Of a stretch of 64,000 nt of DNA, positions 1 to 64,000 are shown one piece after another (positions within the stretch are counted from its first letter, which is position 1; each line of letters begins with the position of its first letter). This stretch comes from Mobula birostris (taxonomy: Eukaryota): the NCBI RefSeq assembly GCF_030028105.1, contig NW_027277693.1:186001-250000 (forward strand). Reading direction: 5' to 3'. A program made the position numbers and the translations under genes. Under the pieces are notes generated by a model. The model searched no databases. It was not told the origin of the DNA and worked only from the letters and a program-made list of their open reading frames with translations.

Positions 1-154
1 TGTCCCTTCTGGATCCAGAGCCGAGAGGAAGGTGTTGATGGTGGATGATTTCCCAGCCCCCACCAGGCCGACGAGCAGGATGTTTATACAGGAGTTTCCA
101 CAGCCCTCAGGGGGTTTGTAGTTACACAAATTGTTCCTCAGAGTCTCCAGATTC
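1..154 (-). CDS. IFI44L: Exon: start of IFI44-family P-loop domain (NLETLRNNLCNYKPPEGCGNSCINILLVGLVGAGKSSTINTFLSALDPEGT)
   Basis: Acceptor tggcag|G at 155/154. Walker A GxxGAGKSS is preceded by ILLVG and a YxP motif, as in IFI44/IFI44L. Confidence 0.8.
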
Positions 155-3100
155 CTGCCAGAGGCCAGGGAGACAGAGCATCAGCTGTCTGGGTGAAACG
201 GGTTAACAAATTAACACCCCGATTATGGGAACCTACCGTTTGTCCATGGTTGGGGAGTGAAAACAGCCATCCTCTGAAAACTCTGAAATGCAATGTGAAA
301 GTATTAATTTATTTGTTTTTTCATCTCGAGAATTAGGGGTGGCGTGCTCTCAGTAATGGACTGAATATAGAAACTCACTGCTTCCCATGTTTGGTGTGTA
401 AACCCAGTGATCGGTGCCGGTGTGCTGACTGCGCTTTAGCCTGTGGGGATCCAAGTCTGTTTCTTGCTTGCACTTTCACTTGGCTTGCGGCTGCTCAATG
501 TGCAAACTTGGGTAGGGTGATCAAGTGAAGCAGGAACCAGTAAAGAATTTTACAGTGAGACTACATTCATTCTGCCTTTGCTGTCATCCAGATTCAGCGA
601 CTCCACCCAGGGAGTACATGTTAACTCACAAAAAGAACCCTTCCTGTTTACAGTACAATCACCCACCAACAGGAAACATGACAGTTAACTTGTTCCCAAA
701 TTAAAGAAGTAGAAAAGCCCTTAACTCAGCAGTGGAGTTATAGGGACACCGCTAATACAGTGTTTACGTGGCAAGCTATTCTTGTTTTACGAGGCTGAGT
801 TGCTAGCTTGACGCTCAACCCGGCACGGATGGAAAGCGTGCCCAGGAGCGGCCCAACTGGGTTCGAACTCGGGAACCTTCGCTCCGGAGTCCGGCGCTGA
901 TCTCACTGCGCCACCAGCTGGCCATAAACACAACGTATTATGTACAAAATGATGGAGGAACTCAGCAGGCCAGACAGCATCAATGGAAAAGAGTACAGCC
1001 GATGCTTCAGACTGAAACCCTTCTTCGGAACTCCTGTTTGTGAACACACTGTGCGTTTGCCTGTCCTCTTGACTGCAACTTCAATCTCTCTCATCAGGCA
1101 GGGTTCCTAAACCATCCAGTCTCTGTACACAAGAGGAACATAATACATCTACACCTTTGATATGCCACGACTCGTGCCCCAATCCTTGCTTCTCATCGTT
1201 ACACTGAAGATTCACTGAGCTCTTTTCACTCTTCTCTTGTGTGCAGGATGAAAATGTCAAATGATCTAGTTGCTCACTGCACAATGAGGGAGTCTCACTG
1301 CCCTGCGGATCCTCGCTCGACCCTAGTGCACAACACACACATCAATCAGAAACCGGTAACCTGGGAGTTGGTGCTCAGGGTACTTTAGAACCCACGGAGA
1401 TTTTCTGTTCTGAGCCTCCCTCCCTCCCTCCCATCCCAGTCTGTCACTGACTGACTGGGATACCGTTCTGACACTTTCCCATAACGCCCACCCCAGACAC
1501 ACCTGCCCTAGGGCATTGAATTGGAGACTGAGGGAGTACAGAATGAGGCTAATCGGCCAACTATTTAATACACCAAGAATGAGGTTATTCGCCCAATAGT
1601 TCTGTGATGACCGATATGCCCAGCTGGATAAACCCAACTTCCTGAAGTCAACATTATTCGCTTAACCCTGCCTTTACATGCATCTATCCAGGTGCCCCTT
1701 CAATGATACCATTGTACCTGCTGCACCCACTTTCTTGGGCAGCTCAGTCTATATACTCACCACTCTATCGGTGAAAGAATTGCCCCTCAGGTCCTATTTA
1801 GACCTTTCCACTTCACCCTAAGTGACTACAATGTCTGACTGACTACAGTTAGTTCCATCATTTTCTCACACAAGACACACATCAATCATATCCCTCACAG
1901 TCTATATAGAAAGGTTACAGTGAAGCGTGAGGCGTGACAGGAAGAGACAGGTTTTACCCACCGGGAGAGGAATGTTCTCTCGATCTGGTTCTGTCACTGA
2001 GACTCTGTCTGATGGCCCGAATGGTATTTGGACAATGGCACTGAACTTTCTTCCTTTTGAGAATATCGCTGGTTTCTCTCCAAAGTACTCGATGAACTGC
2101 TGTTCCCTCATGGAATAACCCTGGACAGGTCCTTAACTTCTCCTCTCCCACATCTTGGGATTTCTGCAACAGAATCACAGCACAAGTGTCTTCCTTCCGC
2201 GCTCTTCCGCCTCCTGCAACACAGAGTAACAGAGTGTCTGGGTGCTGCTGTGGGATGGGTGTGTGTCCCACCCACTGGGTACATCAGCCCTGAGCTCAGC
2301 ACTTTCCACCTGGGGCTGTGCCCACCTTCCTGCCCCCGTGTGTGTTCAGTTGATGCTGACTATGTACAAGACAGCCCTCCCATCCCACTACTGGCACTCA
2401 CCTCCCCACACAAGCTACAGCACTGACAGTAGCATCATTTTTCCACTGGGACTTTCATCCCAGGAATGATCTCCCCACTCGAGCACAGAAAGTTCCAAAC
2501 ACCATTACACACAGGGGATGGGAACCGACCCATGTCCTGGAGAATGTTACACCAGGATCCACAGTCCATTACCTCACAGCTGTTTGTGGGAGCTTGCTCT
2601 GCACCATTATACATCCCCATCACAATGATAACTACTGTGAGATTTGGTGGCAGGGCAGCACAGGACATGACAAAGATAAGGAAGGTGCTACATCAATGCA
2701 GTGCCACTGTCCTACTGCGAACCAAATCCTAAGATGACACACAGTCATAATTATTGTATCTCAGAGGAACAGAAGAGCCAGTAGTCAGCAGAAATCTCCA
2801 AGGGAAGGGGATACCACGGAAGCGAATTAACTTCATGACTTCACCTGTGGACAGGACGAGAGTATCTACCTGTGACCCACTGCAGGGCATTTCGAAAATC
2901 CTCAATTTCATGAGACACATTGTAGACAAACAGGACACAGGGAATCCTTGGCCTTTCACACTGGTTGATATTCAGCTTCTTCACAATCTCTTCATGGACG
3001 GATCCTCGACCGTAACATTGCACTGTAAAACACAGAACCTGTGCTCACTCAGTCTGCCTCACACCAGCACATTTCACTCAAGGTGATTCCTAGTAACAAA

Positions 3101-6100
3101 AGGGAAGGGGATAGATTTAATGTTCCTCCAAGCTCAGTGACGGGCACCCATCAGCATGGGAATGGGCTCTGTTTCACTGTCAATCTGTCAGCAAATGGGA
3201 GTTCTCAAGGGATGTGAAAGCAGCAGGTTAAGTGGGGTAGTTTACAGAGGCGGGGAGGAGTGTTGCAGACAGTGGAGACCGCAGAGATGACATGGAGTGT
3301 AGGTTCCAGAGTGGGTCAGAGAGATGGGGAGGGGTCACAGATACTGGAGTGTTGTAGGTGTTGCTGAGGGTCACAGAGAATGGAAGTGCTGTAGGGTCCA
3401 TTTGGGCTCAGAGAGTGGGATGCGTAGGGAACAGAGAGGAAGGGAAAACAGACACACCGACAGGGTGAGGTATTGACGTGGGTGAGATAGTAAGCACCCT
3501 GACTCTCACAATGCACAGAATACCATCCGTGGAAGCATCGGGTCCACTGATACAGAGCCACATCCAACCTACAGGGACCTGTCACTGGGAGATGGCAGGA
3601 TGTGCCCTGTGGAGGCCCTTCAGCCCATTGAGACATTGGACAATACAGCAGGATACAGGCCCTTTGGCCCAACCACTCCTCACTGGCCATGGTGCCCATC
3701 CAGATTGTCCACATTGTCTGCATTACAACTGTATCTCTCCAAGTCCCACTCCCTCCATGTACCTATCCCAGTGCTTCTGAACGGATACTCTTGTACCTGC
3801 CTCAACCACTTCCCCTGTGAAAAAGACCAAAGACCAAAGCATAGTTATTATCAAAGTACATATATATCACCATATACACCCCTGAGATTCATTTCCTTGC
3901 TGACATACTCAATAAATCCATATTGGAATAGTAACCATAATAGTTTCACATACTCTCCACTGTCTGGGTGAGAAAGTTATCCCTTAGGCCCCTTTTAACT
4001 CTCTCCCCCTCACCCTTAACCCAGGGACTCTAACTGTGGATCCTCTGACCTGGGGAAAATGCTGTTACCATGAACCTTATCTTGCCCCAATAATTTTATT
4101 TACTTCTCTATTCTGTCTTCCACAACACCCTTCCTCACTATCAGCAGCACCCTCTAATTTTGCGTCATCCACAGATTTACTGATCAAGCCTTGTGCACTG
4201 GCACTCGAATCATTTCTCAAAATAGTAATGAAAGAAACCCAACACTGATCCCTGCAGAACACAGCTCATCAGCAGCCTCCATTCCGAAACACAACCTTCA
4301 ACCACCTCCCTCTGCTTTCGTCCTCCAAACCAATTTTGAATCCACCAATCTTGTCTAGATTCCTAACCATCCAGATTACCCTACCCGGTAAGATCTTGCC
4401 GAAGGCCTCACTGAACTACAAATAGACAACAACCACTGCTCTGCCCTCATCTGCATTTTCAGTCATCTCTTCAAATAGATTGAATACTGTTCACTAAGCA
4501 GAGCCTTTCATGCACAAAACCGTGCTGACTCTATTTAATCTGACTCCGTCCACTCAAATGCTGGTACACCCTGTCCTTCAGAACTCCCGTAGGTAACTTC
4601 CCCACTACTGATTTCGCACTGACTAGTGTGTCATTCCCTGGCATGAACTTCCTGCTCTTCTCAAACAACCAAACATGAGCTTCCTTCCAGTCTTCTGCAA
4701 CTTTTCTGGTGGCAAATGATGAGACAATAATCTCAGCAACAGACTCCACAATTTCTCCTCTCACCACCCACAAATTTCAAGGAAGCACTCACTCTGGCCC
4801 TGGGGATTCATCCACCAATACACGGTAAGGTTGCAAATATCAACCTTTCTGGAAATATGACCAGTCTCCAAAACTTCTCTACCTAATTCCCTTGAGTAAT
4901 CATGATTATCTCCTCAGTGAAAAAGGAGAAATATTCGTTAAGAATCTCACCCATGTCGTGCAGGTTAAGACACAGGTAGCCCTGCTAATGTCTGAAGGGA
5001 TCTACTCACTTGGTAACCACCCTTTTACTCATGATGTGGCTGCAAAATCTCTTGGGATTTTCCTTTACCTTTCCTGCCAGAGCCTTCTCACACCCTCTCT
5101 CTTTGCCATCATGATTTCACTCGATTGTTTTCTTATTCATTTGGGATTAAAGGATTACCCAAATTAGGTGCATGACCTAATTGAACTATATCCTTTCATA
5201 TTTTTCTTGATCAAAGTTTTTATATCTCTCATATTTTTGTATCCACCGAACTGACTCTCCATGATTTCATGCAATGCTTCCTACTAGACCAACAGACCAT
5301 GCGAGGTCTTATTGTAGGTTCTGCTAAATGGACAACATTCTCTGCCCGAACCTCATCTACCATTTTGGTCATTCTACAGACAGCTCTAAAGAGGTTCAAC
5401 TGCACAACGTTCCACTCACAACATCATGCAAACTCCTCCTAATCAGTCTCTGTCTACCCAAATACTGGGACATCCTATCCATCGAATTGCCCAGCACTAA
5501 CTTCCCCACAATTGACGTCAGGTTCACCGGTCTGTCATTCCTTGGCTTATCCCTTCCATCGTTCTTAATCTATGGAACAACATTGATCTCATTGCATTCT
5601 TCAGTGGCATCGTTCCCCAGTAACAAACAAGGAAGGAAATATCTCTGTAAGGGCCTCCGCTGTTTCCTCTCTAGCCTCCCATGGAGTCCCAGGAATCACT
5701 TAGTAAGGCCCTGGTGATTTATCCACTAAAATGCACTGTAAGTCTGCAAATAGCTTCTCCCTAGGAATATGTATGTCCCCCAATCCATCTTAACATGCTT
5801 CCCTCATCCTTTGAGCAATTGTGATTTTCAGTAAATAGGTTCAACAATCATTGAGAAGAAATATTTTTTATAATTTCAACCTATCTGCCCCCTCAAGTTA
5901 TAGACAGCCTGCTGATCCCCAACATGAACTTCTCCCTGACTAACCATCCTTTTAATCTTTACTGAGCTATAGAACCTCCTAGAATATTTCTTAATCTTAT
6001 CTGTCAGATCCATCTCATACCCTCAATTTGCCCTCCAGATTTACCTCGTGCATTCTTGATACTTTATAATCATCATGAAGTTGACTTGTCCCCAAATTAA

Positions 6101-9100
6101 ACACAATGTATTATGTGCAAAATGATGGAGGAACTCAGCAGGCCGGGCAGCATCAATAGAAAAGAGTACCGCCAATGCTTCGGACTGAGACCCTTCTTTG
6201 GGACTCCTGTTTGTGAACACAATGTATGCTTGCCTCTCCTCTTGACTGGAACTTCTTCTCCGAGCTCTTTTCGCTCTTCTCTTGCGTGCAGGTTGAAGAT
6301 GTCAAATGATCTGGTTGCTCATTGTACAATGAAGGAGTCTTGGAGTCTCTTCTTGGCGGCGTATGGAGTAAGACTTTTTTGTCATAGCTCCATCTTCACA
6401 ACTTACTTTCCACTGCTAGATTCGTTTTAAGTTTGAAAATTTATTATATTTGCTGAAGAATTTATGATTTAATTACAGTGGCTGATATTCGATCTGGAAC
6501 TGAATTAAGAAATGGCAAAACTCTGCCCGAACCTCAACATACAAAGAAATCAGAGGAACTTTCTACTTCAGAAAGAATGCTCTCTTTAATAGTGAAGATC
6601 GGTGCGGTGGATACCAAAATCGATAAATTGACAAATGCTAATGAAATGCTTGAAAATACCATTCTTGCTGTTCAGGAATCTTTGAAGAATCTGGAAGATC
6701 GATATCAGACGTTTAAGCAGAGCACTCATAGAATTGAAAGGGAACTGGAGTTAATGAATCAAACTATTAAAGAGCAGGATTTGAAGATGTCTTTTATGGA
6801 AAAGAAAATTAATGAGACTACTTCGGAGCTATTAAGGATTAAGACGAAAACGATTGATCTGGAAAGCAGAAATCGCAGGATGAATTTACAAAACTGGGTT
6901 TGCCTGAAAATACGGAAACCGGTGAGTCATTGAAGTTTTTTTCGAACATGTTATATTCATTCTTTAGTGACATTCTCGAAGCCTGTCCAGTATTGGACAG
7001 AGTCCACCGAATTCGACCTCCTAAGCCTTCAGCTGAAACGAAACCACGTCCTGTAATCCTGTGTTTCCATTATTTTACAACCAAATAAGCTATTCTTCGG
7101 AATGCAAGGAAAAGGGATAAGCTAATTTATAACAAAGTTATGATTCATATAGTTGAAGATTTTACTCCAGAGATTTATGCTGAAAGAATTAAATATTAGG
7201 AAGTTATGGCGTAACTTTTTAAAATTAACTGCCGCCTGTCTCTGCGTTATCTGGCTCGTCTGATGATTACTCCACCCAATGCTCATATAAAATGGATTGA
7301 CTCTCCAGGAGACAGTTGGAAATTTATAAAAGAGTTTCAGTCCACTTTGTAAGCAATTTGAAAAGCTGATCCTTAGCTGGGAGTTGTTTGTAACACCGTC
7401 GATGAAAGTCTGCTCCACGTTTTATGAATGCCCAGAACCAAACTTGGTTGACTCACTTAGATCTGCTGTTGTTTGCTTTAACAGTTAATGTAGTTTTGAA
7501 TTTAACATATATATATTTACTTACCTTTTCTTTGATTTGTAAGTCTTTAATATTATTTGTAGTATATTAGTTGCTTGGATTTATCCTTTTTTTTGAATAC
7601 ATGGCTGCGTATTTTAAATGGATTTAAGATGGCCGTCGTTAATTCGGTCTTAACTTTTGTTAGACATAATATGAAAATATTTGGAATCTGTTTACTTTAT
7701 GTATTCTTTGTTATTCCTTTTTGCTGGTGGTGACCTTTTACTTTGTAAGCAGGCGCGGCTATTTGGAGACAGGGGTTAAAGGTTATTAGAATAGCATGCT
7801 GTCCGCCTATTGGATGGTTTCTGAGTTTCCGGAGGAGGAGGGTGGATCTATTAGATTAGTTCTTTTTTCACTGGGCATTCCTGAGGAGTTTTTCTTTGTC
7901 AATCATTTTGCTTGTCTTTCTGATCGAGTCAAGCTTCGACCTTTGTTCCAATATAGGCTGCACCTGCGCATTAAATTACTTTATAAAATTTTTAAAATAA
8001 ACTTTAAGTATGGATCTCAATAAAATTAATATAACATCTTGGAATTTAACTGGTATGAACCAACCTATTAAGCGCAGAAAGATTTTTAAGAATTTAAAAA
8101 CACTTCATGCAGATATTATTCTAGCGCAGGAGACTCATTATCTGTAGGCAGGATGAAAATCGTTTTTTTAAATTTTGGAAGGGACCCTTATTTCATTCTT
8201 TATCAGTAAATAAAATAAGAGGGGTATCTATTTTTATTCATTCTAAAATCCCCTTTGTTCATTTTAATACTGTTACTGATTTAATTGGAAAATATTTAAT
8301 TGTCACTGGTCTGTTATGTGGTCAAAATGTGGCTTTGGTGTGTGTATATGCACCTAATATAGATAGCCCTGAATTTTTTAGGACCCTATTTTCTGTATTG
8401 CCAAATTTAAATGAATATAAGTGGATTATGGGCGGTGACTTTAACTGCTGTCTCAATACGTCGATTGACAGATTGTTCACCAATCCGTCACTTCCTAATA
8501 AAGCTGCAACTTGTATTAATTCTTTTTTATTAGAATATGGTTTGGTGGATATTTGGAGATTTAAATATCCTAAAGAAAACGATTTTTTCTCTTTTTTTCA
8601 CATGTATACCATAAAGATTCAAGAATTGATTATTTTTTGCTGGACACACGATTGGTGCCCCTGTTGCTGAGTGTGATCATGCACCTATGAAACTAACTTT
8701 GAAGTTTTCTGATACTCTTTGGATACCTCAGTGGAGATTTAATGTTTCATTGTTACAAGATTCAACTTTCATAAATTTTATTAAGGAGCAAATTTCTCTA
8801 CTTCTTGAATTAAATGCAACTGAGGGAGTGTCAAATTTGGTTATTTGGGATGCGATGAAACCTTTTCTTAGGGGACAGATAATTTCATATTCGGTAGATT
8901 CAAGAAGGAAAACTGAGGTGGAACTTTTGCTGATCACTAATAGGATTAAAGAAATAGATAAAGTTTCTTCAGTAAATGCCCAGTGAAGATCTCTTTAAGG
9001 AAAGGATGGAACTCCAAGCACAGCATGATTTTCTTTTGACTTTTCCCATTGAACAGCAACTTCTTAAATCCAAAAGCCAATTTTATATATATGGAGACAG

Positions 9101-36100: not shown

Positions 36101-39100
36101 ACACCACACATATCAATCAGCAACATGCAACCTGTGATTTGGTGTTGATGTTAACTTAGAACCGATGGGGATTTTCTGTTCTGACCCTCCCTCCTCCCAC
36201 GCCCCAATCCCGGTGTGTCACTGACTGACTGTGAAACAGATCTGACAGTTTCCCATCAAACCCACCACAGACACACCTGCCCTAAGGCATGTAATGGGAG
36301 ACTGAAGGATGTACAGAATGAGGCTATTCAGCCCATCGTTTAATACACCAAGAACGAGGTGATTTGCCCAGTGAGTCTGTGATGACCAATATGCCCAGCT
36401 GGATAAACCCAATTTTCTGCAGTCAACTTTATCCGCTCTAACCCTGTCTTTTCATGCATCCACCCAGGTGCCCCTTCAAAGATACCATTGTACCTGCTGC
36501 ACCCACTTTCTCGGGCAGCTCTGTCTATATACGCACCAACGTACAGGTGAAAGAATTGCCCCTCAGGTCCTATTTAGACCTTTCCGATTCACCCTAAGCA
36601 GATGTCCCAAACTTTGGACTCTCATGACGTGTGGGAAAGACTGTTGGCACCCACCTTATCCTTGCCACACCATGATTTTAAATGTTCCTATATTATCATC
36701 ACCTCCTACATGACAGGAAATAATGACCTACTGTGCATAATCCCACACTATTACTCAGTACAGGCAACAGTCTTGCAATTCTCTGCCCAATATCCAGATT
36801 CATCACATCTTTCCTATAAAAGGGTGACCAAAATTCTGCACCACGTTTCATTTGCAGCCTCACCAATAACATTTTCAACAGCAACATAACCTACTAGTTC
36901 CACACTCAACAATTGAATGCCAGCGTGCTAAATGTTATTTTCTCCCAACATGTTCCTGCAGCTCAGGACATAAGCAGAACTTCTGAGCTTCTAAAGTGAG
37001 CTATTTCTTCCCAGGTATCATTTTAATTCTAAAATAGTGACAGATCAGATTCAAGATTTGGTTTTTCTGTTACATCTACATTCAAACATTCAATGAAATG
37101 CTCGTTTATCTGGATCAACAACACAGTACAAGGATGAGGTAGGGGCAGCCGTAGTGTCACCCTGCTTCCAGTGTCAACATGGCATGCCCACAACTTACTA
37201 ACAAAAAGGCTTTGGCACCATAGCAGGAATCTAGAATACCCAAGGGAAAGCCACGGCAATCACAGAGAGAAAGTACACACTCTTTCAGGACAACAGAAGG
37301 AATTGAAATGCCATGAGTCGTGCCCCAACTTCGCTTCTCACCGTTACATTGAAGCTGCTCTGCGTTCTTTTCGCTCTTCTAGTGCGTGTCGGTTGAAGAT
37401 GTCAAGTTATCTGTTTGCTCACTGCTCAATGAGGAAGTCTCAGTGCCCTTTGGATCCTTGCTCGACCCTAGTGCACACCACACATATCAATCAGCAACAT
37501 GCAACCTGTGATTTGGTGTTGATGTTAACTTAGAACCGATGGGGATTTTCTGTTCTGACCCTCCCTCCTCCCACGCCCCAATCCCTGTGTGTCACTGACT
37601 GACTGTGAAACGGATCTGACAGTTTCCCATCAAACCCACCACAGACACACCTGCCCTCGGGCATGTAATGGGAGACTGAAGGATGTACAGAATGAGGCTA
37701 TTCAGCCCATCGTTTATTACACCAAGAACGAGGTGATTTGCCCAGTGAGTCTGTGATGACCAATATGCCCAGCTGGATAAACCCAATTTCCTGCAGTCAA
37801 CTTTATCCGCTCTAACCCTGTCTTTTCATGCATCCACCCAGGTGCCCCTTCAATGATACCATTGTACCTGCTGCACCCACTGTCTCGGGCAGCTCTGTCT
37901 ATATACGCACCACCCTATGGGTGAAAGAATTGCCCCTCAGGTCCTATTTAGACCATTCTGATTCACACTAAGCATATGTCCCAAGCTTTGGACTCTCATG
38001 ACGTGTAGGAAATACTGTTGGCATCCACCTTATCCTTGCCACACCATGATTTTAAATGTTCCTATATTATCATCACCTCCTACATGACAGGAAATAATGA
38101 CCTACTGTGGATAATCCCACACTATTACTCAGTACAGGCAACAGTCTTGCAATTCTCTGCCCAATATCCAGATTCATCACATCTTTCCTATAAAAGGGTG
38201 ACCAAAATTCTGCACCACGTTTCATTTGCAGCCTCACCAATAACATTTTCAACAGCAACATAACCTACTAGTTCCACACTCAACAATTGAATGCCAGCGT
38301 GCTAAATGTTATTTTCTCCCAACATGTTCCTGCAGCTCAGGACATAAGCAGAACTTCTGAGCTTCTAAAGTGAGCTATTTCTTCCCAGGTATCATTTTAA
38401 TTCTAAAATAGTGACAGATCAGATTCAAGATTTGGTTTTTCTGTTACATCTACATTCAAACATTCAATGAAATGCTCGTTTTTCTGGATGAACAACACAG
38501 TACAAGGATGAGGTAGGGGCGGCCATAAGTGTCACCCTGTTTCCAGTGTCAACATAGCATGCCCACAACTTACTAACAAAAAGGCTTTGGCACCGTAGCA
38601 GGAATCTAGAATACCCAATGGAAAGCCACGGCAATCACAGAGAGAAAGTACACACTCTTTCAGGACAACAGAAGGAATTGAAATGTCATGAGTCGTGCCC
38701 CAATCTTCGCTTCTCACCGTTACACTGAAGCTGCTCTGCGTTCTTTTCGATCTTCTCGTGCGTGTCGGTTGAAGACGTCAAGTTATCTGTTTGCTCACTG
38801 CTCAATGAGGAAGTCTCAGTGCCCTTTGGATCCTTGCTCGACCCTAGTGCACACCACACATATCAATCAGCAACATGCAACCTGTAATTTGGTGTTGATG
38901 TTAACTTAGAACCTATGGGGATTTTCTCTTCTGACCCTCCCTCCTCCCACACCCCAATCCCGGTGTGTCACTGACTGACTGTGAAACAGATCTGACAGTT
39001 TCCCATCAAACGCACCACAGACACATCTGCCCTAGGGCATGTAATGGGAGACTGAAGGATGTACAGAATGAGGCTATTCAGCCCATCGTTTAATACGCCA

Positions 39101-42100
39101 AGAAGGAGGTGATTTGCCCAGTGAGTCTGTGATGACCAATATGCCCAGCTGGATATACCCAATTTCCTGCAGTCAACTTTATCCGCTCTAACCCTGTCTT
39201 TTCATGCATCCACCCAGGTGCCCCTTCAATGATAGCATTGTACCTGCTGCACCCACTGTCTCGGGCAGCTCTGTCTATATACGCACCACCCTATGGGTGA
39301 AAGAATTGCCCCTCAGGTCCTATTTAGACCATTCCGATTCACCCTAAGCAGATGTCCCAAGCTTTGGACTCTCATGACATGTGGGAAAGACTGTTGGCAT
39401 CCAGCTTATACTTGCCACACCATGATTCTTTATATTTCTATATCATCACCACCTGCTGTGTTACAACGAATAATGACCTAGAATGGAAAACCCCTCCCTA
39501 TTATTCAACACTGGCAACAGTCTTGCAATTCTCTGCCCAATTTCCAGTTTAACCAAATCTTTCCTCTTAAAGGGTGACCAAAACTCTGCACCATGTTCGA
39601 ATGGCAGCCTCACCAATAACATTTTCAACGGCAACATAATGCTCTAGTTCCGTATTCAATGCCCAACTAATGAATGTCAACGGGCTGAATGGTACTTTTT
39701 CCCAACATGATCCTGCAGCTCAGGACAGAAGCAGACCATCTGAGCTTCTAAAGTGAGCTATTTCTCCTCAGGTATTATTTTAATCTTAAAATAGTGACAG
39801 ATCAGATTAAAGATCTGTTTGTGTGTTAGTTCTACATTGAATCATTGAAACATTCAGTGAAATGCTCGTTTGCCTCAATGAACAACACAGTACAAGGATG
39901 AGCTGGGGGGTGCGCCCGTAGCTGTCACTGTGATCCCATTACCAACGTAACATGCGATCAACTTACTTACACTAACCCTTTGCGAAATGGCAGGAAACTG
40001 AATACTTCATGGAAACCTACTGCAGTCATGGGGAGAAAGTACAAACTCCTTAAAGACAGTGGTGGGAGTTGAACACACATGGCTGCTACTGTAAAGTTTA
40101 TGCTAATCACTACAGAATTTCTTGGGATTTTCCTTAACCTTATCTTCTAGACCCATCTCACACCCTCTCTCTTTGCCCTCCTGATTTCCCTCTTGATAGT
40201 ATTCTTAGTCATTCAATGTTAAGGGATTCACTGGGAAATAACCTAATTGCACCTTGTCCTTCCATATTTTTCTTGACCAAAGCCTGAATATCTCTCGTCT
40301 TGACAGGTTTACCCTCCACTTCGACAGGAACATACTGCCTCTGCAGACTTGATATTTCTCAACTCCTGCCCTAATCGCTCAGGGCGAGCCCCAAGCCTGC
40401 ATTCTCACCGTTACACTTCTCCGAATTCCTGCCTCTCTTCCTTTGGCTCCATCCTGAAGGAATCGAACAATCCAATAGTTCATTCACCACCGAAGTCTCA
40501 TCGTCCGGCGCATTGTCACCGCGCCCTACTGGAAAACATACACATCATTCAGAAGCCTGAAGATTTATCTCCCTTATGTCACTGTAAGGCTGCCAATACC
40601 ACCTCCCTGGTCATAAGACTGTCCACCAAAACATTTCCACGTTTCCCGTATTTCTTGAGCATGCTCAGTAAACACTGAGGAAAAATACATTTTAAAACCA
40701 CACCCATCTCCAGCTGCAGAAGACATCGGCAGCCTTGCTGATATCTAAGGGAACCTACTCTCTTGCCAGCCACTCTTTTACTCTTGATTAAACGTCTTGG
40801 GATTTTCTTAACCTCACCTGCCAGATTCATCTTTTACTCTCTCTTTTCTCTGATGATCTTCCTTTTGAGAGTATTCTGAGCCTTTCTAATTCAAGGGATT
40901 CACAAATCCTAGACCAAAACATTCCTTCAGTTAGTCCTGACGAAGGGTCTCGGCCTGAAACGTCGACTGCACCTCTTCCTAGAGATGCTGCCTGGCCTGC
41001 TGCGTTCACCAGCAACTTTGATGTGTGTTACCAAAATACTCTGTGTGTTTCATTCTTTTTCCTGATCAGAACTTGACAATCTCTCATCATCCAGAATTCC
41101 CCACACTTGCCAGGTTTACCGTTCACCTCAAAGGAACATATTGCCCCTTAACTCTCAATCTCTCTGCAGTCATGCCCCAAGCCTGCCCTCTCACCGTTAC
41201 AGTTAAGCTTTTCTGAGCTACTGCCATTCGTCTCTGGGCTCCAGATTGAAGAACTACGAGAAGCCGATCGTTCATTTGACACTGATAGGGTCTTACCACC
41301 CTGCAGATCTTCACTCCACCCTATTGCACAACACAAACAGCATATTGTTACCTGGGAATTGGTACTGAATTGACCTCAGGACCCATGGGGGATTCCTTCT
41401 CTGACCCACCCACCCTCCTTCCTGCTGTATCTTCTGACTGACTGGGGTACAGACCCATCACTCTCCCCCCACTACCACCCCAGACACACATCTGACACGT
41501 CCCTTATGTTTGTAGTGGGAAGTTTACAGTGTAAAATGAGGTGTAGCAATAGAGAGTCAGGTTTTACCCACCGGAGCAGGAACCTCCTCTGGGTCGGGTC
41601 CTGTCGATGAGACTCTGTTTGACAGTCTGAATCACTGTGGGGCACTGGTACGTCTTTGATCTACTCCACCAGCTACTGGAATCCATCCAGAATACACGAA
41701 AAACTTTAGTTCCCTCATGGAATAACCCTGAATTTTTTGTTATCTTCTCCTCTCTGACAGCTGTGGATTTCTGCAATAGAATCACGGCACAGATGTCTTC
41801 CTTCTGCACCAAACCTCCTCCTGAAACACAGAGTAACAGAGTGAGCTGGGTGATGCCGTGGGAGGGCTGTGTGTCCCTCAGGGTACATCAGCACCTTCCA
41901 CCCAGGGCTGTGCCCTCCCTCCTGCCCCCTGTATGCCCGGGTGGTGTTGTGGTGATGCTGTCTGTGTACAAGGCAGTCCTCACACCCCCACTACAGGCAC
42001 TCACGTCCCACAGGAGGTACAGCACAGGGATTTTCAGCCCAACCACCAGCTCCCCTATCAGGTGCACAGAAAGATCCACATACACCATTTCACACAGAGC

Positions 42101-45100
42101 GAGGGAGCCCAAGTGTGTGTCCCGGACAACGTTGCATCAGAATACCTGGTAGATTGCCCCACTGATGTTTGTGGGAGCTCGTTGTGCACCAATACACATC
42201 TCCCATCACAATAACAACCTCTGTCCCCTCGACAGATACAACTGGGCAGGACATTATCATCTTCAGAAAGCCATTTCATCAGTGCATGTCCCTGATTTAT
42301 AAATGAATCAATCACAAGGAACACACACAGTGTTAGTGTGCTCCTCAGGTAGGGAAGAGCCAGCAGAGATCAGAAGCCCCAAAAGGGAAGGGTTTTCATG
42401 GAAATGTTATCAGTCAGTGACTTCACCTGTGCTAGAAGAAATAAACAGGTAGACTATTTTCTAACTTGCGAGAAAATTCAAAAATCTGAGGACTTAGGAG
42501 TCCTTGTGCAGGTTAATTTGCAGCTTGAGTCATTGGTGAGGAAGGCAGGTACAATGTTAGCATTCATTTCAAGAGGACTAGAATATAAAAGCAAGGATGT
42601 AATGTTGAGGCTTTATAGAGCATTGATGAGGCCTCACTTGAAGAATTGAGTGATTTCGGCCCCTTTTATAAGAAGGGATGTGCTGACATTGCAGAGGACA
42701 TTCATGAAAACAATTCCAGGATTGAAAGGCTTGTCATATGAAGAGTGTTGATGGCTCTGGGTCTGAACTTATTGGAATTCAAAAGAACGAGAGGTGACCT
42801 CATTGAAACCTACAGAATGTTAAAAGACCTTGATTGAGTCGATGTGGAGAGTATGTGTCCTCTGGTGGGGGAGTCTAAAACCAGAGGACACAGCCACAAA
42901 ATTGAGGGAATGGAGATGAGGAGAAATTTCTTTATCCAGAGAGTGGTGAATCTGTGGAATTCATTGTCACAGGTGGCTGTGGAGGCCAAATCATTGGGTA
43001 TATTTAAGGTTCTTGATTAGTCAGGGCATGAAGAGATACCGGGAGATGGCAGGAAATTGGAGCTGAGAGAAAGAATGGATCAGCATGATAAAATGGTGGA
43101 GCAGATTTGATGGGCCAAATGGCCTAATTCTGCTCCTATATCTCATGGTCTTATTAATTATTTACCTGTGACCCAGTGAAAGGCATTCTTAATATCCAGA
43201 ATTTCATGAGACACTTTGTAGACAAAGAGAACACAGGGAACCTCTGGCTCTTCACAATGGGAGATGTCCAGCTCCTTCACAATCTTCTTATGGATCTCTC
43301 CCCGACCGTAACATTGCACTGTGAAACACAGAGTGTGAGTTCATCTCCCAGTCTCAGTGTGTCACCCAGAGATGCACCCGGTCTCACTTCTCCCACATGA
43401 GGGGTAGGATGTTACAGACAGGTAGATGATAGTGTAGTGGGGTAGACGGAGGATAGTGGGGATAGTGGAAAGTGTGGGGGCAGGAGGGAATGGTAGAGAT
43501 TGGGATGGAGAGGTGAGGAGCGTGGGGATGGAGGGATGGGGGTGGTGAGGGCAGTATCCCCCATCCCTTTCCCCACTGTCACTCACCTAACACTCTCTCC
43601 ACAAACTCTACGTCCACACTAGACCGGATAATTTTGAAAATGCCGGTTTCGCGTAAAAACCACAGGCGTCACACTAGGCATTTTTAAAAATACTTCTGTC
43701 CACATTAAAACAGATATTTGGGTGAATCTCTTCCTACTAGGCATGCGCAGGACACACAGAAAACAAGCGAAGAGGAAACGGAGACACGAGGAAATCTGCA
43801 GATGCTGGAAATTCAAGCAACACACACAAAAAATGCTGGTGAACGCAGCAGGTCGGGCAGCATCTATAGGAAGAGATACTGTCGACGTTTTGGGCCTGAC
43901 CTGCTGCGGTCACCAGCATTTTTTGAAGAGGAAACGGTATACTTGGTGCGCGTTTGTCTAGTTACAGACTAGAAAAACCCGTTACCCATACACACTACGC
44001 CGGATATTAGTCGCTTTCAGATTTATTCACTCTGGAGAGCAAATCTGAAAATCTCCACACTAGACCAGATAAATCCGTAACCGAAGATTTTTCTCTTCGT
44101 TTTGACACTGAAATGGCGTTTTCCTCCCGCGAAAACGGAGATGTTCAGAAACACTCTCCAGAGTGAATAAATCTGAAAACGCCTTACATCCGGTGTAGTG
44201 TGTACGGAGTAACTGGATATTTTTAAAACCGCTGTCATGACGTGCCGGAACAAATGGTGGCGGCAGCGCGGCATTTCATTGTTTTCCAGAACGCAACCTC
44301 CAATACCACAACAATATGACAATGGATGTGTAACAGCCTAATGTAACATTGTATGGAAATACAAGATAACACTGATGCTTTATTAATGTATTGTTTGTGC
44401 AAACATTCAATAGATGCAATTGTCACTTTTGCCCAGTAATTCGTTTTATTGCACGTGTTAAATACAGCAAAATAAAACACAAAGACATGGCAACAGTAAA
44501 GGGAAACAAATGAGGGACAGCAAATTTCACTTTTGCCCAGTAACAAGCCTTATTGTATTTAGTTGTAGCTGTCGTCCCTTTCACCGAAGAGACTATGGCT
44601 ATAGGAAATGTTTCTGGACAAAGGCGCAGCAAGTCTTTTGTTTGGCAATTTCCTTTTGAGTTTTTCTAGTCTGTAACTGGACAAACGCGCAACAAGTACT
44701 GTATCCCGGTTCCTCTTCGCTTGTTTGCTGTAGCCTGCGCATGCCCAGTAGGAGAAGATTCGCCCAAATAGACCGGATAATTTTGAAAACGCCGGTTTCG
44801 AGTAAAAACGACAGGCGTCCACATTACGCGTTCTTCAAAATACCTCCGTTTTCATTAAAACGGATATTTGGGCGAATCTACTCCTACTGGGCATGCGCAG
44901 ACACATCCGCAGAAAACAAGCGAAGAGGAAAAGGTGTAATATTTACGTTTCCGCGGCAGCGTTGTGCTATTTCCATAGAATAAAGCTAGAGTACCAACAA
45001 CAACAGCGAAAGAAAGTTTTCAACAATGTCTTCGAGGAATACTAAGAAAACCTCCGCTGGAAAAATCAGACCGGACTTCTTCGTTTAGACAGACAATGAA

Positions 45101-45987
45101 GACGAGCTGTTTCTGCGAGTTACAAACGACTACAAAGTCAGCAAAGCAGTAGAGATATTTAATTCCAAACAAACTATTAACGTAGACAATAAAGTAAACA
45201 ACACACGCATGAAGCCGTCCTCTATCCAAGATCAACAAGAGATTCGAATCTTCTGCCGCCAGACCTGCGCAGTAATGACACTAATAGTTTTAAAGATAGA
45301 CTCAATCAAATCAATTTGGGGGATCTAGTCAAAAAAGCTCACTCTACAATTTAAGTCTCACGCCGTTCACGCGACTGTGCGTTATGACAGCCGTCCGGCA
45401 GTGCTTGCGCAGTACCAAGCAGAAGCAGAAAAAACATTGTTGTTGTGGTGTTGTCATTATAGCGTTTGTAGATATCTCCATTATCCCGTCCTCACTACAA
45501 CGCGAAACAATCGTTTTCAAATTTACACCCTCTGGAGAGTGTTTTCGAAAATCTCCGTTTTCGGGGGATGAAAACGCCGTTTCAGTGTGGACGGAGAGTC
45601 AAAACGAAGAGAAAAAGCTTCGTTTTCAAATTTATCCGGCGTAGTGAGGTCGCTTAATGTGGACAGAGGTATTTTTTTAAAACGCCTAGTGTGGACTCCT
45701 GTCGTTTTTACGCGAAACCGGCGTTTTCAAAATTATCTGGTCTTGTGAGGACGGAGCCTCATCAGTCAAAGTCCTCTCCCTCTGTCAAATATCCCTATCT
45801 CGCCCCGTCCCATTTCCATCACACCGCCCTCCCTCTGCTTCCCCGAACGCCTCTCCCTCACCCCACCCGACCTCTCTTCCTGTCCCTCCGCCTTGTTCTC
45901 CCACATTCACCAACTCCTCCTTCCCCTCACCCGCCGCCCTGTCACCCCCACAAATCACCCTCACCCACCGTTGCACCGAATCCCCAT
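1..45987 (-). CDS. Multi-exon IFI44/IFI44L-like gene model (3' end runs off window): start exon, 3 copies of a two-exon alpha/beta domain, many linker exons, then P-loop GTPase-like domain
   Basis: Chain of AG/GT-bounded exons, all phase 1-1 until exon 237-282 (phase 1-2), which joins exon 1-154 in frame. Connectivity is inferred from phase compatibility; there is no transcript evidence. Confidence 0.7.
237..282 (-). CDS. 46-nt connector exon (EFSEDGCFHSPTMDKR), phase 1 to 2
   Basis: tttcacattgcatttcag|AG...AAACG|gtaggt; joins exon 1-154 in frame. Confidence 0.7.
573..680. repeat. ~108-bp dispersed repeat; inverted copy at 63892-64000
   Basis: cctttgctgtcatccagattcagcgactccacccaggg...aggaaacatg matches the reverse complement of the window end. 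Confidence 0.8.
706..923 (-). mobile_element. tRNA-derived SINE
   Basis: Minus strand GGCCAGCTGGTGGCGCAGTG (A box) and GAGTTCGAACCC (B box). Absent at paralogous empty sites near 6090, 15185 and 23310 (cccaaattaaacac). Confidence 0.75.
1197..1322 (-). pseudogene. Linker exon copy with mutated donor (AACG|atgaga instead of gtgaga)
   Basis: Open frame GSSEDPQGSETPSLCSEQLDHLTFSSCTQEKSEKSSVNLQCN; acceptor cactag intact; donor GT changed to AT. Confidence 0.6.
1962..2213 (-). CDS. Domain copy 1, exon B (GGGRARKEDTCAVILLQK...GLFHEGTAVHRVLW...HSSP), 252 nt, phase 1-1
   Basis: gtgttgcag|GA ... CCCG|gtgggt; open frame conserved in three paralogous copies. Confidence 0.8.
2870..3022 (-). CDS. Domain copy 1, exon A (VQCYGRGSVHEEIVKKLNINQCERPRIPCVLFVYNVSHEIEDFRNALQWVT), 153 nt, phase 1-1
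   Basis: tgtgttttacag|TG ... ACAG|gtagat; conserved in three copies. Confidence 0.8.
3524..3568 (-). CDS. Possible 45-nt mini-exon (GWMWLCISGPDASTD), phase 1-1
   Basis: tccctgtag|GT...GATG|gtattc; paralog at 20762-20806 is also open; donor is weak. Confidence 0.35.
3630..6090 (-). mobile_element. Mosaic of old degraded CR1 LINE fragments (duplicated at ~12840-15190 and ~20870-23310)
   Basis: Remnant CR1 ORF2 motifs: EDWKEAHV..LF.K, SVVGKL, ISKSVDDAKL. Confidence 0.7.
6341..12327 (+). mobile_element. Full-length but decayed LINE-1 (ORF1 ~6478-7300; ORF2 EN-RT-CCHC ~8010-11970; A-rich tail)
   Basis: ORF1 coiled coil plus DLESRNRR and RVHR..KPRPVI; ORF2 YAPN, GGDFN, KAPGPDG, YRPISLLNVDFKILSKI. 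Many stops and frameshifts. Tail AATAAAAAGATTAATAAAGAAAGAAA; diverged TSD gaaggagtct / gaggaagtct. Confidence 0.92.
10219..10410. mobile_element. Penelope-derived palindromic short element inserted in LINE-1 ORF2, with hammerhead motif at 10303-10340 (+)
   Basis: Inverted arms (caagcaacacac..gttgctggtgaacgcagcaggccaggcagc / gctgcctggcctgctgtgttcaccagcaac..gtgtgttgcttg) around CTGACGA-AGGG..CCT-GAAACGTC. Confidence 0.7.
15463..15588 (-). CDS. Linker exon, 126 nt, phase 1-1 (VSSEDPQGSETPSLYSEQPDHQTSSTCTQEKSEKSSEKLQCN)
   Basis: gtgcaccag|TG ... TGTAACG|gtgaga; open frame. Confidence 0.65.
16585..16620 (-). ncRNA. Minimal (Penelope-type) hammerhead ribozyme motif, sense to the host pre-mRNA
   Basis: AGUC-CUGACGA-AGGGUCUCGGCCU-GAAA-CGUU-GACU. 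Confidence 0.6.
16958..18491 (+). mobile_element. 5'-truncated I/Nimb-clade LINE: RNase H domain plus C-terminal CCHC; (GACA)n tail
   Basis: ORF 16971-18197 has IYTDG, ICSDSSS, FLWVPAHVGVKGNERVD, RLRLGH, CEECQEEESVEHVVLCC. The empty site is visible at ~40055-40080. Confidence 0.85.
18248..18392. other. Assembly gap (Ns)
   Basis: Run of n. Confidence 1.
18834..18950 (-). CDS. Linker exon type 2, 117 nt, phase 1-1 (VQDDSLPGDEPSVVNEQLDCSISSGWSQRKRSRNSEKCN)
   Basis: ttccagtag|TG (NAGNAG) ... TGTAACG|gtgaga; paralog at 40409-40525. Confidence 0.65.
19198..19449 (-). CDS. Domain copy 2, exon B, 252 nt, phase 1-1
   Basis: gtgttacag|GA ... CCCG|gtgggt; GGGRVLKEDICAVILLQK...GLFHEGTAVHRVLW. Confidence 0.8.
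20106..20258 (-). CDS. Domain copy 2, exon A, 153 nt, phase 1-1
   Basis: ttttacag|TG ... ACAG|gtagat; VQCYGRGSVHEEIVKQLNINKCERPRIPSVLFVYNVSHETEDFQNALQWVT. Confidence 0.8.
20762..20806 (-). CDS. Possible 45-nt mini-exon (DWMLLCICGPDASRD)
   Basis: tccctgtag|AT...GATG|gtattc; paralog of 3524-3568. Confidence 0.35.
23589..23714 (-). pseudogene. Array linker exon with in-frame TAG (23626-23628)
   Basis: CAC GAG changed to CAC TAG; splice sites intact (cactag| ... AACG|gtaaga). Confidence 0.6.
24965..25090 (-). CDS. Array linker exon (GSSKDPKGTETSSLSSEQTDNLTSSTDTHEKSEKNAEQLQCN)
   Basis: gtgcactag|GG...AACG|gtgaga, 126 nt, open. Confidence 0.55.
26340..26465 (-). CDS. Array linker exon
   Basis: Same splice sites, open frame. 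Confidence 0.55.
27716..27841 (-). CDS. Array linker exon
   Basis: Same splice sites, open frame. Confidence 0.55.
29091..29216 (-). CDS. Array linker exon
   Basis: Same splice sites, open frame. Confidence 0.55.
30466..30591 (-). CDS. Array linker exon
   Basis: Same splice sites, open frame. Confidence 0.55.
31842..31967 (-). CDS. Array linker exon (E>K variant)
   Basis: Same splice sites, open frame. Confidence 0.55.
33217..33342 (-). CDS. Array linker exon
   Basis: Same splice sites, open frame. Confidence 0.55.
34592..34717 (-). CDS. Array linker exon (acceptor variant cagtag, NAGNAG)
   Basis: Open frame; both AGs preserve phase 1. Confidence 0.55.
35968..36093 (-). CDS. Array linker exon (E>K variant)
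   Basis: Same splice sites, open frame. Confidence 0.55.
37342..37467 (-). pseudogene. Array linker exon with in-frame TAG (37379-37381)
   Basis: Same GAG>TAG change as the 23589 copy; splice sites intact. Confidence 0.6.
38718..38843 (-). CDS. Array linker exon (S>I variant), first in transcription order
   Basis: Same splice sites, open frame. Confidence 0.55.
40409..40525 (-). CDS. Linker exon type 2, 117 nt (GRGDNAPDDETSVVNELLDCSIPSGWSQRKRGRNSEKCN)
   Basis: gttttccagtag|GG ... TGTAACG|gtgaga. Confidence 0.65.
40933..40968 (+). ncRNA. Minimal (Penelope-type) hammerhead ribozyme motif within a short repeat (~40923-41030)
   Basis: AGUC-CUGACGA-AGGGUCUCGGCCU-GAAA-CGUC^GACU; stem I AGUC/GACU; palindromic ACGU stem III. 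Confidence 0.65.
41195..41320 (-). CDS. Divergent linker exon, 126 nt, phase 1-1 (GWSEDLQGGKTLSVSNERSASRSSSIWSPETNGSSSEKLNCN)
   Basis: gtgcaatag|GG ... TGTAACG|gtgaga; length, frame and splice sites preserved despite strong divergence from the array exons. Confidence 0.7.
41572..41820 (-). CDS. Domain copy 3, exon B, 249 nt, phase 1-1
   Basis: gtgtttcag|GA ... TCCG|gtgggt; GGGLVQKEDICAVILLQKSTAVREEKITKNSGLFHEGTKVFRVFW; one codon shorter than copies 1 and 2. Confidence 0.8.
42434..43152 (+). mobile_element. CR1 LINE 3' fragment in the A3-B3 intron
   Basis: MLAFISRGLEYKSKDVMLRLYRALMRPHL, QRVVNLWNSL, CR1-type 3' UTR ending ctatatctcatggtctta. Confidence 0.85.
43166..43318 (-). CDS. Domain copy 3, exon A, 153 nt (VQCYGRGEIHKKIVKELDISHCEEPEVPCVLFVYKVSHEILDIKNAFHWVT)
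   Basis: tgtgtttcacag|TG ... ACAG|gtaaat; not in the ORF track in this frame, translated by hand. Confidence 0.8.
43608..45758. mobile_element. Non-autonomous PIF/Harbinger composite DNA transposon
   Basis: ~100-bp TIRs (ctacgtccacactagaccggataattttgaaaa.gccggtttcgcgtaaaaa, inverted at 45660-45758), an internal third end at ~44770, and a Myb/SANT-like ORF relic at 45026-45157 (DFFV*TDNEDELFLRVTNDYKVSKAVE). Confidence 0.75.
45969..45987 (-). CDS. Putative first coding exon (MGIRCN, phase-1 donor)
   Basis: caggATGG strong Kozak; TGCAACG|gtgggt donor; adjacent to a CpG-rich promoter-like region; in frame with exon A3. Confidence 0.55.
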
Positions 45988-63764: not shown

Positions 63765-64000
63765 GACGTGAGGAGACTCAGCACAATGTCCACAGACTCA
63801 CAGGGAAGGTGAAGGAAAGGGAATTGAATGGAGGTCAATAACATGCCCTGGTGGAACAATGCGACCGAATTTCCCCGGTGGAAAGTACCAACATGTTTCC
63901 TGTTCGTGGGTGATTGTACTGTAAACAGGAAGGGCTCTTTTTGTGAGTTAATGTGTACGCCCTGGGTGGAGTCGCTGAATCCGGACGACAGCAAAGGTGG

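Follow-up and report, generated by a model that had tools for sequence, protein, structure and literature searches.

IFI44 and IFI44L are prominent interferon-stimulated genes, the biochemistry of which is poorly understood. Here we describe a locus of Mobula birostris (contig NW_027277693.1, positions 186,001 to 250,000; this whole 64-kb stretch is called the window) in which the exons of a short IFI44-like GTPase lie downstream of three copies of a two-exon domain, which we call A-B, and of a long array of linker exons. The GTPase-like domain has in common with the IFI44 and IFI44L proteins of tetrapods and teleosts a P-loop domain with the G1 motif GAGKSS, a WDSAG-type G3 and a GTKFE-type G4-like motif, as located by alignment with Rab1a. 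The elasmobranch relatives differ in lacking TLDc, in their length of about 270 amino acids (aa) and in their MGS start, and the window gene differs further in an N-terminus made of A-B domains and a linker cassette array. The likeness to IFI44 is one of NCBI names and motifs. The review PMC5614904 gives TLDc as a putative domain of IFI44, and bioRxiv 10.1101/693333 describes the family as expanded in fish, with 19 zebrafish members, seven of them interferon-induced.

A comparable architecture is found in the IFI44-like proteins of sharks (Carcharodon carcharias LOC121270969, Hemiscyllium ocellatum LOC132833880), in which the GTPase follows nearly identical, Ser/Asp/Glu-rich tandem repeats of about 38-39 aa. 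The number of repeats varies between isoforms (P0042 versus P0043, P0046 versus P0050; P numbers denote stored database proteins), and the principle of a cassette-built spacer is the same, but the repeat sequences are unrelated to the linkers of the window and P0042-P0050 have no A-B domain. In Mustelus asterias P0020 the whole GTPase domain is tandemly duplicated. Also close are members of the A-B family in RefSeq (such as XP_059825542.1 of Hypanus sabinus, 819 aa; XP_062912719.1 of M. hypostoma, 705 aa; and XP_072910181.1), which share with the window the two-exon, roughly 132-aa domain, the types of linker and the multi-module layout, and some of which also have the same GTPase end. Unlike them, the window locus features a 12-unit array of linker exons; the stingray fusion has no linkers, and many of the paralogues are single-module proteins with an N-terminal hydrophobic anchor.

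The GTPase gene and its upstream cassettes

The reading that we favour, with moderate confidence, is that of a gene for a short IFI44-like GTPase preceded by a field of phase-1 cassettes, which yields isoforms consisting of A-B proteins with or without a GTPase end. The window would contain a manta-ray member of an elasmobranch cluster of IFI44-like-named GTPases of about 270 aa without TLDc. This gene would keep its own MGS first exon and lie downstream, on the same strand, of a cassette field composed of three A plus B pairs and Ser/Thr/Glu-rich linkers, one of which appears to have been amplified together with its intron into the array. Since all cassettes have phase 1-1 and the first intron of the GTPase gene is in phase 1, any subset of them splices in frame into the exon that begins at 282 (e282). 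All the relevant features are on the minus strand and are listed below in the direction of transcription.

45987-45969 (-): first coding exon e1, MGIRCN, phase 0 to 1, with ATG and GT donor; residues 1-6 of P0008, P0015 and P0016
43318-43166 (-): exon A3, first half of A-B domain copy 3, 153 nt, phase 1-1; exactly residues 8-57 of P0008
41820-41572 (-): exon B3, second half of domain copy 3, 249 nt, phase 1-1; exactly residues 59-140 of P0008
41320-41195 (-): diverged linker exon, 126 nt, open, AG/GT borders; absent from database models
40528/40525-40409 (-): type-2 linker exon; its tandem acceptors, 40528 and 40525, form a NAGNAG pair
23549-40058 (-): 12-unit tandem array, period about 1375 bp, with one 126-nt phase 1-1 linker exon per unit
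38843, 37467, 36093, 34717, 33342, 31967, 30591, 29216, 27841, 26465, 25090, 23714 (-): acceptors of the array linker exons
20258-20106 (-): exon A2, 153 nt; exactly residues 3-52 of P0003
19449-19198 (-): exon B2, 252 nt; residues 54-136 of P0003
18953-18834 (-): second copy (b) of the type-2 linker exon, 120 nt, open; skipped in P0003
18248-18392 (no strand): assembly gap of 145 N, intronic, inside a copy-specific insertion (16948-18491)
15588-15463 (-): linker exon between B2 and A1; residues 138-178 of P0003
3022-2870 (-): exon A1, 153 nt; residues 180-229 of P0003
2213-1962 (-): exon B1, 252 nt; residues 231-313 of P0003; alternative internal acceptor at 2163
1322-1197 (-): linker exon 1322; the donor of its 126-nt form (at 1196) reads AT in the assembly
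388-379 (-): native first coding exon of the short GTPase form, ATGGGAAGCA followed by gt, encoding MGS, with GT donor; bypassed by the long forms
282-237 (-): exon e282, 46 nt, phase 1 to 2, with an ATG in the context CCAACCATGG; residues 315-328 of P0003
154-1 (-): P-loop exon e154, GLVGAGKSS, running off the window edge; residues 330-380 of P0003

Every internal exon was confirmed to have an AG acceptor and a GT donor, and every A, B and linker exon to be open and in phase 1 to 1, the exceptions being the damaged linkers. A first-pass annotation, made from the letters alone, had proposed exons with GT-AG sites and in-frame splicing, and all of these were found with their borders and phases as described. 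The intact exons add up to 3180 nt, or 1060 codons to the window edge (1116 with a 168-nt form of linker 1322; both are sums of exon lengths), which brackets the approximately 1090 codons given in that annotation. Library and database searches of the window exons were made exon by exon, and the context of joined proteins was taken solely from the stored database proteins.

Evidence for splicing comes from four runs of Logan contigs compared with positions 1-6000 of the window (X4, X6 and X11 from organism A, X13 from organism B). The contigs contain GT-AG joints, and therefore spliced RNA is present in these runs. The joints 1962/282 and 237/154 were found in X4 and X6, while 2870/2213 appears as loose ends in X4 and X11 and its variant to the alternative acceptor, 2870/2163, in X6 and X11. 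At the acceptor of A1, a loose end of 29 letters in X4 (shorter in X6 and X11) has its sole match in the window at the 3' end of the 15588-15463 exon. A contig over 2051-2066, found in X4 and X6, has the letters of B2 at all four of the sites that separate B1 from B2 there, so B2 is expressed. The path from linker to A1, B (B1 or B2), e282 and the P-loop exon is present in RNA contigs. The first-pass annotation had made its fusion depend on a joint from B1 or a linker to e282, and a joint from a B exon, which may be B2, to e282 is present in the contigs. Linker 1322-1197 is left out in the contigs of organism A and included in a contig of X13. An 832-nt contig of X6 at 155-483 fits 483-851 well and 5-155 with 13 differences, with 153 unmatched letters between the two, and probably derives from a paralogous short IFI44-like gene at another locus.

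The database models give a longer view of the same exons. P0003 (443 aa) is identical letter for letter to seven window exons and has the order Met, A2, B2, exon 15588, A1, B1, e282 and e154, followed by 63 residues beyond the window. The path A2-B2-linker-A1-B1-e282-e154 is present, then, in a database model, and this exact match, together with the contig joints, bears out the proposal that the modules are spliced in frame onto the P-loop exons of a family named IFI44-like. The initiator Met of P0003 would most likely come from the single ATGG/gtgaga site at 22183 (-), which lies between the array and A2 in intron sequence derived from a long interspersed nuclear element (LINE). Separate models (P0008, 250 aa; P0015, 251 aa; P0016, 200 aa) join e1, A3, B3, the type-2 linker and array exons 38843 and 37467, with A3 skipped in P0016, and all three are halted by the nonsense codon of 37467, in unit 2 of the array. 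P0015 (RefSeq isoform X1) differs from P0008 (X2) by one residue, which is accounted for by the tandem acceptors 40528/40525. No contig from the runs on 1-6000 and no database model connects e1-A3-B3 or the array to A2 onward.

The nature of the GTPase gene itself was examined through its relatives, which were searched with residues 318-443 of P0003 only. Among 119 candidates, 37 proteins (E down to 2e-96) were related to the P-loop part: 19 named 'interferon-induced protein 44-like', 16 'uncharacterized', P0003 itself and one unnamed, the NCBI names being automatic. They come from rays and sharks and mostly have 255-290 aa (around 270 aa). Of the 35 relatives listed, 18 start with MGSx[F/L/Y]SK and continue directly into a segment of the e282 type (…DGCFH.PTMD.RNL…). 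The window exon 388-379 (ATGGGAAGCA, then gt) is preceded by the same upstream peptide as in paralogue P0032, and P0026, an isoform of a paralogue, begins exactly at the Met inside the e282-type exon. Its alignments to chains of Rab and septin proteins, which cover G1, G3 and G4, are weak (best E 0.0086). Exon 154-1 carries the Walker A (G1) motif GLVGAGKSS, with matches to P-loop families of Pfam only below their cut-offs, and TLDc was not detected by Pfam, whether in P0003 (E up to 1), in six of the relatives (E up to 0.1) or in any A, B or linker exon (E up to 10). The base gene would thus encode a short GTPase of the IFI44-like type that lacks TLDc, and its first intron, in phase 1, is the point of entry of the A, B and linker exons, which bypass the MGS exon. 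Since the relatives, at about 270 aa, have no TLDc and the native first exon survives at 388-379, the modules constitute an alternative upstream extension and not a replacement, and the earlier view that they stand in place of TLDc has to be given up.

The A-B domain and its fusions in other elasmobranchs

Exons A (153 nt) and B (249 or 252 nt) together encode a single domain of about 132 aa. From an alignment of 17 mostly single-module proteins we have built a 132-position hidden Markov model (HMM), which matches 36 of the 71 stored proteins with one to five modules each; P0003 contains two modules in full and P0008 contains one. In the alignment 9 columns are invariant and 11 nearly so, and the conserved blocks read CYGxGxxH, P.VLFVYKVS, LRNALQW, EDICAVILLEK and VRILW. 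An N-terminal hydrophobic segment is present in many of the single-module paralogues, and isoforms with A alone or B alone occur.

An exhaustive HMMER search of 1.84 billion proteins with B1 retrieved 14, of which 10 had E values up to 1e-10. Thirteen of the 14 are from sharks or rays (the P0003 of the window included) and the other, P0013, is from a Logan assembly; several have 2-5 modules. The species are Mobula birostris, M. hypostoma, Hypanus sabinus, Hemitrygon akajei, Amblyraja radiata, Heptranchias perlo and Mustelus asterias. Twelve are named in RefSeq, all as 'uncharacterized protein', so the A-B proteins are public there but only under that label, and literature searches found no paper on the family or its fusions, the supplementary gene lists of shark and ray genome papers lying outside these searches. 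A word-indexed protein search with B1 alone gave no match, which is not evidence of absence because the real proteins fall outside the lengths that it covers (46-145 aa). Pfam has no family for the A, B or linker exons at E up to 10, nor one above cut-off for A-B in the stored A-B proteins that were scanned, and PDB sequence searches with the A-B alignment profile (E 0.099) and with P0010 (E 0.45-0.79) stayed at chance level. The three copies of an unrecognised domain reported at first are coding modules, three in number in the window, with no Pfam or PDB match. Their description as lineage-specific holds for elasmobranchs as a whole (rays, skates and sharks) and fails for anything narrower, the first module being orthologous between Mobula and Hypanus.

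Some candidates for a more distant relationship have been considered. A match to AIG1/GIMAP was seen in two A-B proteins (P0010, 18.1 bits against a cut-off of 27, E 0.0017; P0013, 12.5 bits, E 0.09), where the module aligns with positions ~68-157 of the AIG1 profile, and in none of the other A-B proteins scanned; A-B has no P-loop, both scores are below the curated thresholds, and we have rejected this assignment, keeping the matches as a lead only. An origin of A-B as a degenerate copy of the GTPase domain encoded at the locus was likewise rejected, as no such relationship was detectable by local hhalign of 39 modules against 26 short relatives (probability 0.5%, E 0.12, 4 columns). An Atlas model of P0012, of low confidence (predicted TM score 0.45, predicted local distance difference test 0.61), is nearest to chordate hypothetical proteins and next to TIR- and flavodoxin-type models; its similarity to the latter (TM 0.31-0.44) is below the meaningful threshold, and the feature matches, which score below 0.9, are to hypothetical proteins of chordates, among them a zebrafish-style 'si:ch211-245h14.1' cluster. 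All of these are leads only.

Fusions similar to that of the window are found in other rays. Hemitrygon akajei XP_072910181.1 (P0080, 658 aa) has three A-B modules, then a segment of the e282 type and the whole of the GTPase domain. The Walker A segment of this stingray fusion is degenerate, and it may therefore be a pseudo-GTPase. In M. hypostoma P0002 (705 aa), P0060 and P0083 the A-B modules are joined to the C-terminal half of the GTPase domain, and H. sabinus P0001 (819 aa, 'isoform X11'), with five A segments and four B segments, lacks the GTPase end. A maximum likelihood tree of 39 modules places A3-B3 of the window with the first module of P0001 (support 100/93), and A1-B1 and A2-B2 group with later modules of P0001 and P0002. 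These groupings imply that the multi-module layout predates the split between mantas and whiptail stingrays. The fusions include modules from both major clades of the domain tree, and A-B and IFI44-like genes cluster on the same contigs.

Products of the locus

Several observations weigh against the reading of a GTPase gene with an upstream cassette field and have to be set beside the joints and models described above. The RNA nature of the runs was guessed, and they consist of assembled contigs rather than reads. The joint to e282 may come not from B1 but from B2 or a close paralogue. Splicing at the locus is clearly noisy: acceptor 2163 leads, in the phase of A, to a stop 17 codons on, and in organism B (X13) the path goes from B to linker 1322-1197 and on to e154, skips e282, and breaks the frame after four codons, using a linker donor that reads AT in the window. 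The fused product may lack half of the GTPase domain, or the P0003 model may be incomplete, as its end (...KGTNFQP) comes about 150 residues before those of the relatives. Constraint on the A and B exons is weak. Copy 3 of the A exon has 79% nucleotide identity with copies 1 and 2 and a ratio of nonsynonymous to synonymous substitution (dN/dS) of 0.74-1.05, from few sites. For the B exon the same comparison gives 66-70% identity, no higher than that of the flanking intron (68-69%), dN/dS of 0.44-0.47 and one 3-nt indel; its frame is open in all three copies despite 30-34% nucleotide divergence. A pattern that we take to represent the interferon-stimulated response element is not enriched, with two matches in the window against 1.86 expected, one of them 512 bp upstream of e1. 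Finally, the contig is an unplaced 301-kb scaffold (300,960 bp).

The first-pass annotation had seen here a single giant protein, reaching from e1 to the P-loop over some 1060-1100 or more codons, with three A-B domains, a tract of about ten linker exons and the damaged cassettes skipped. There is something to be said for it, as all exons are on one strand in phase 1-1 with AG/GT borders, e1, with the start M..RCN that P0001, P0010 and P0060 also have, is the sole first exon of the family type in the window, no family sequence is found upstream of 43340 or on the plus strand, and five-module proteins of 819 aa are modelled in Hypanus sabinus. We nevertheless consider such a protein unlikely. 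Neither contigs nor models link B3 or the array to A2, and P0003 has a starting Met of its own, for which 22183 is the likeliest source. The same in-frame stop occurs in two of the 12 array exons (37467 and 23714; the other 10 are intact), and the models from e1 take in the first of these instead of skipping it, and end there. In the relatives from other rays one or two linkers, never a long run, separate the modules. With the models dividing the locus into products of 250 aa and of at least 443 aa, the giant open reading frame (ORF) as originally proposed is not supported.

At the other extreme, only the short GTPase (about 255-268 aa, starting at MGS or at the ATG of e282) might be functional, with the upstream exons a leader or read-through from a neighbouring A-B gene and the chimeras not a stable protein. 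The MGS exon with its GT donor, the CCAACCATGG context of the ATG in e282 and the start of P0026 at an e282-type Met would all fit, as would the frame-breaking splice variants, contigs that are unspliced through 254-570, the weak constraint on the A exons and the truncated GTPase part of P0003. However, the in-frame joint of B to e282 is found in two runs, and no MGS-to-e282 joint is among the joints listed; models from three ray species show this fusion independently of one another, and both clades of the tree contribute modules to it; and the frames are open in 3 of 3 A-B copies. We give this alternative little credence.

Under the favoured reading of cassettes spliced onto a short GTPase, the locus would yield a family of isoforms, multi-domain A-B proteins with or without a GTPase end, rather than one giant protein. 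The A-B domains may act as binding or adaptor modules on flexible, disordered spacers, recruiting or regulating the nucleoside triphosphatase (NTPase) in innate immunity. The name of the family, the expansion of IFI44 in fish and the fact that A-B genes cluster with IFI44-like genes on shared contigs would point to a role in immunity; this role and induction by interferon are inferences. A bolder version, which we put forward as speculation and which would surprise us if it held in full, is that A-B is an elasmobranch-wide innate-immune binding domain, possibly flavodoxin- or TIR-like, deployed by rays as a combinatorial cytosolic sensor or adaptor, with splicing setting the number of domains and the variable 12-unit array the length of the tether to the IFI44-like NTPase. 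If true, this would be a germline-encoded, splice-tunable family of multivalent GTPase effectors.

The comparisons have a wider bearing. Sharks and rays hold a large family of short, TLDc-less versions of IFI44-like proteins, which in rays have repeatedly been joined to arrays of an unknown domain. The ray fusions could serve as a natural experiment on the partners of a GTPase domain, and A-B would be a new domain family for the immune repertoire of cartilaginous fish. The locus also appears to be a clean case of ongoing exon shuffling: its cassettes are symmetric in phase 1, one exon has recently been amplified 12-fold in tandem along with its intron, and mutations to stop codons or at splice sites determine which cassettes are usable.

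The linker array, the assembly and other repeats

Repeats were found by self-BLAST, and the count of 12 units is that of the assembled scaffold. Within the array (23549-40058) the identity of neighbouring units averages 0.956 and drops with distance, units differing by 4-15%. Tandem Repeats Finder returned 0 rows for the window; it missed the array because its longest period, 500, is shorter than the 1375-bp unit. The exon is the least variable stretch of the unit: pairwise differences average 0.013 in the exon and 0.069 over the unit as a whole, and only 4.1% of windows of equal size in the unit are as low as the exon window; the 12th unit as cut overruns the end of the array, which inflates the downstream variability values. 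The encoded peptide, with 15 of 41 residues Ser or Thr, 8 acidic and 4 hydrophobic, looks like a disordered spacer.

Outside the array there are young segmental duplicates (1829-6255 versus 19065-23474 at 91.6%; 12842-16522 versus 20936-24649 at 89.9%) and an older copy (41174-42224 versus 18813-19873 at 67.8%). The assembly gap (18248-18392) is intronic, and no reading frame depends on it; the closest exon end upstream (18834) is 442 nt away and the exon that follows (15588) is 2660 nt away. Its flanks, 18492-18983 and 16656-16947, match 40066-40558 and 39773-40059, segments that lie side by side, with order and orientation preserved, in the older, paralogous unit; the gap therefore lies inside a copy-specific insertion. 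The intron of P0003 from 19198 to 15588 spans the gap, and continuity across it is indicated indirectly, by this intron and by the colinearity with the paralogous unit.

That the layout is unreal, because the 12-unit array or the gap join is mis-assembled or a collapsed haplotig on an unplaced scaffold, is improbable: the contig is short while the paralogues are located on a 171-Mb chromosome, there are 145 N within the locus and the unit count comes from the assembly and not from raw reads, but differences of 4-15% that grow with distance are not the pattern given by duplicated assembly of a single unit, the gap flanks are colinear with the paralogous unit, a database model has an intron across the gap, and DNA-type runs of the same organism contain 49-70% of the sampled words of 1-3100.

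Between the duplicated segments, an AT-rich block (6256-12837, GC content 0.33-0.37) breaks the duplicated unit where a further A-B pair would be expected. It is bordered by a truncated linker (12364-12325) and a damaged one (6340-6256), and is probably an insertion or replacement that removed one module.

The window also contains other repeats. An unbroken LINE ORF of 1010 aa, with a reverse transcriptase (RVT_1, E 5.6e-34) and an endonuclease (Exo_endo_phos, E 6e-12) domain, occupies 58489-61521 (-), and a second, partial copy, 96.8% identical over 1.9 kb, lies at 61850-63994 (-). Degenerate LINE pieces, with the tail '...RVVSIWTELPEKV...', are found in every unit of the array and in the introns upstream of A1 and A2. 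Summed contig depth reaches 8,759-26,655 at 801-1000 and 700-4,819 at 3801-4000, in all four runs, and these jumps (at ~780-1000 and 3801-4000) therefore mark high-copy interspersed repeats. Scans of the window with Rfam (gathering thresholds) and ARAGORN called nothing, including at ~780-1000, where the repeat looks tRNA-derived by eye. Just downstream of each type-2 linker, at 18758-18669 and 40333-40244 (-), there is an ORF (MFLLKWRVNLSRQ...) that is about 90% identical to the N-terminus of M. birostris P0009 (XP_072122155.1), and which may be an internal alternative first exon.

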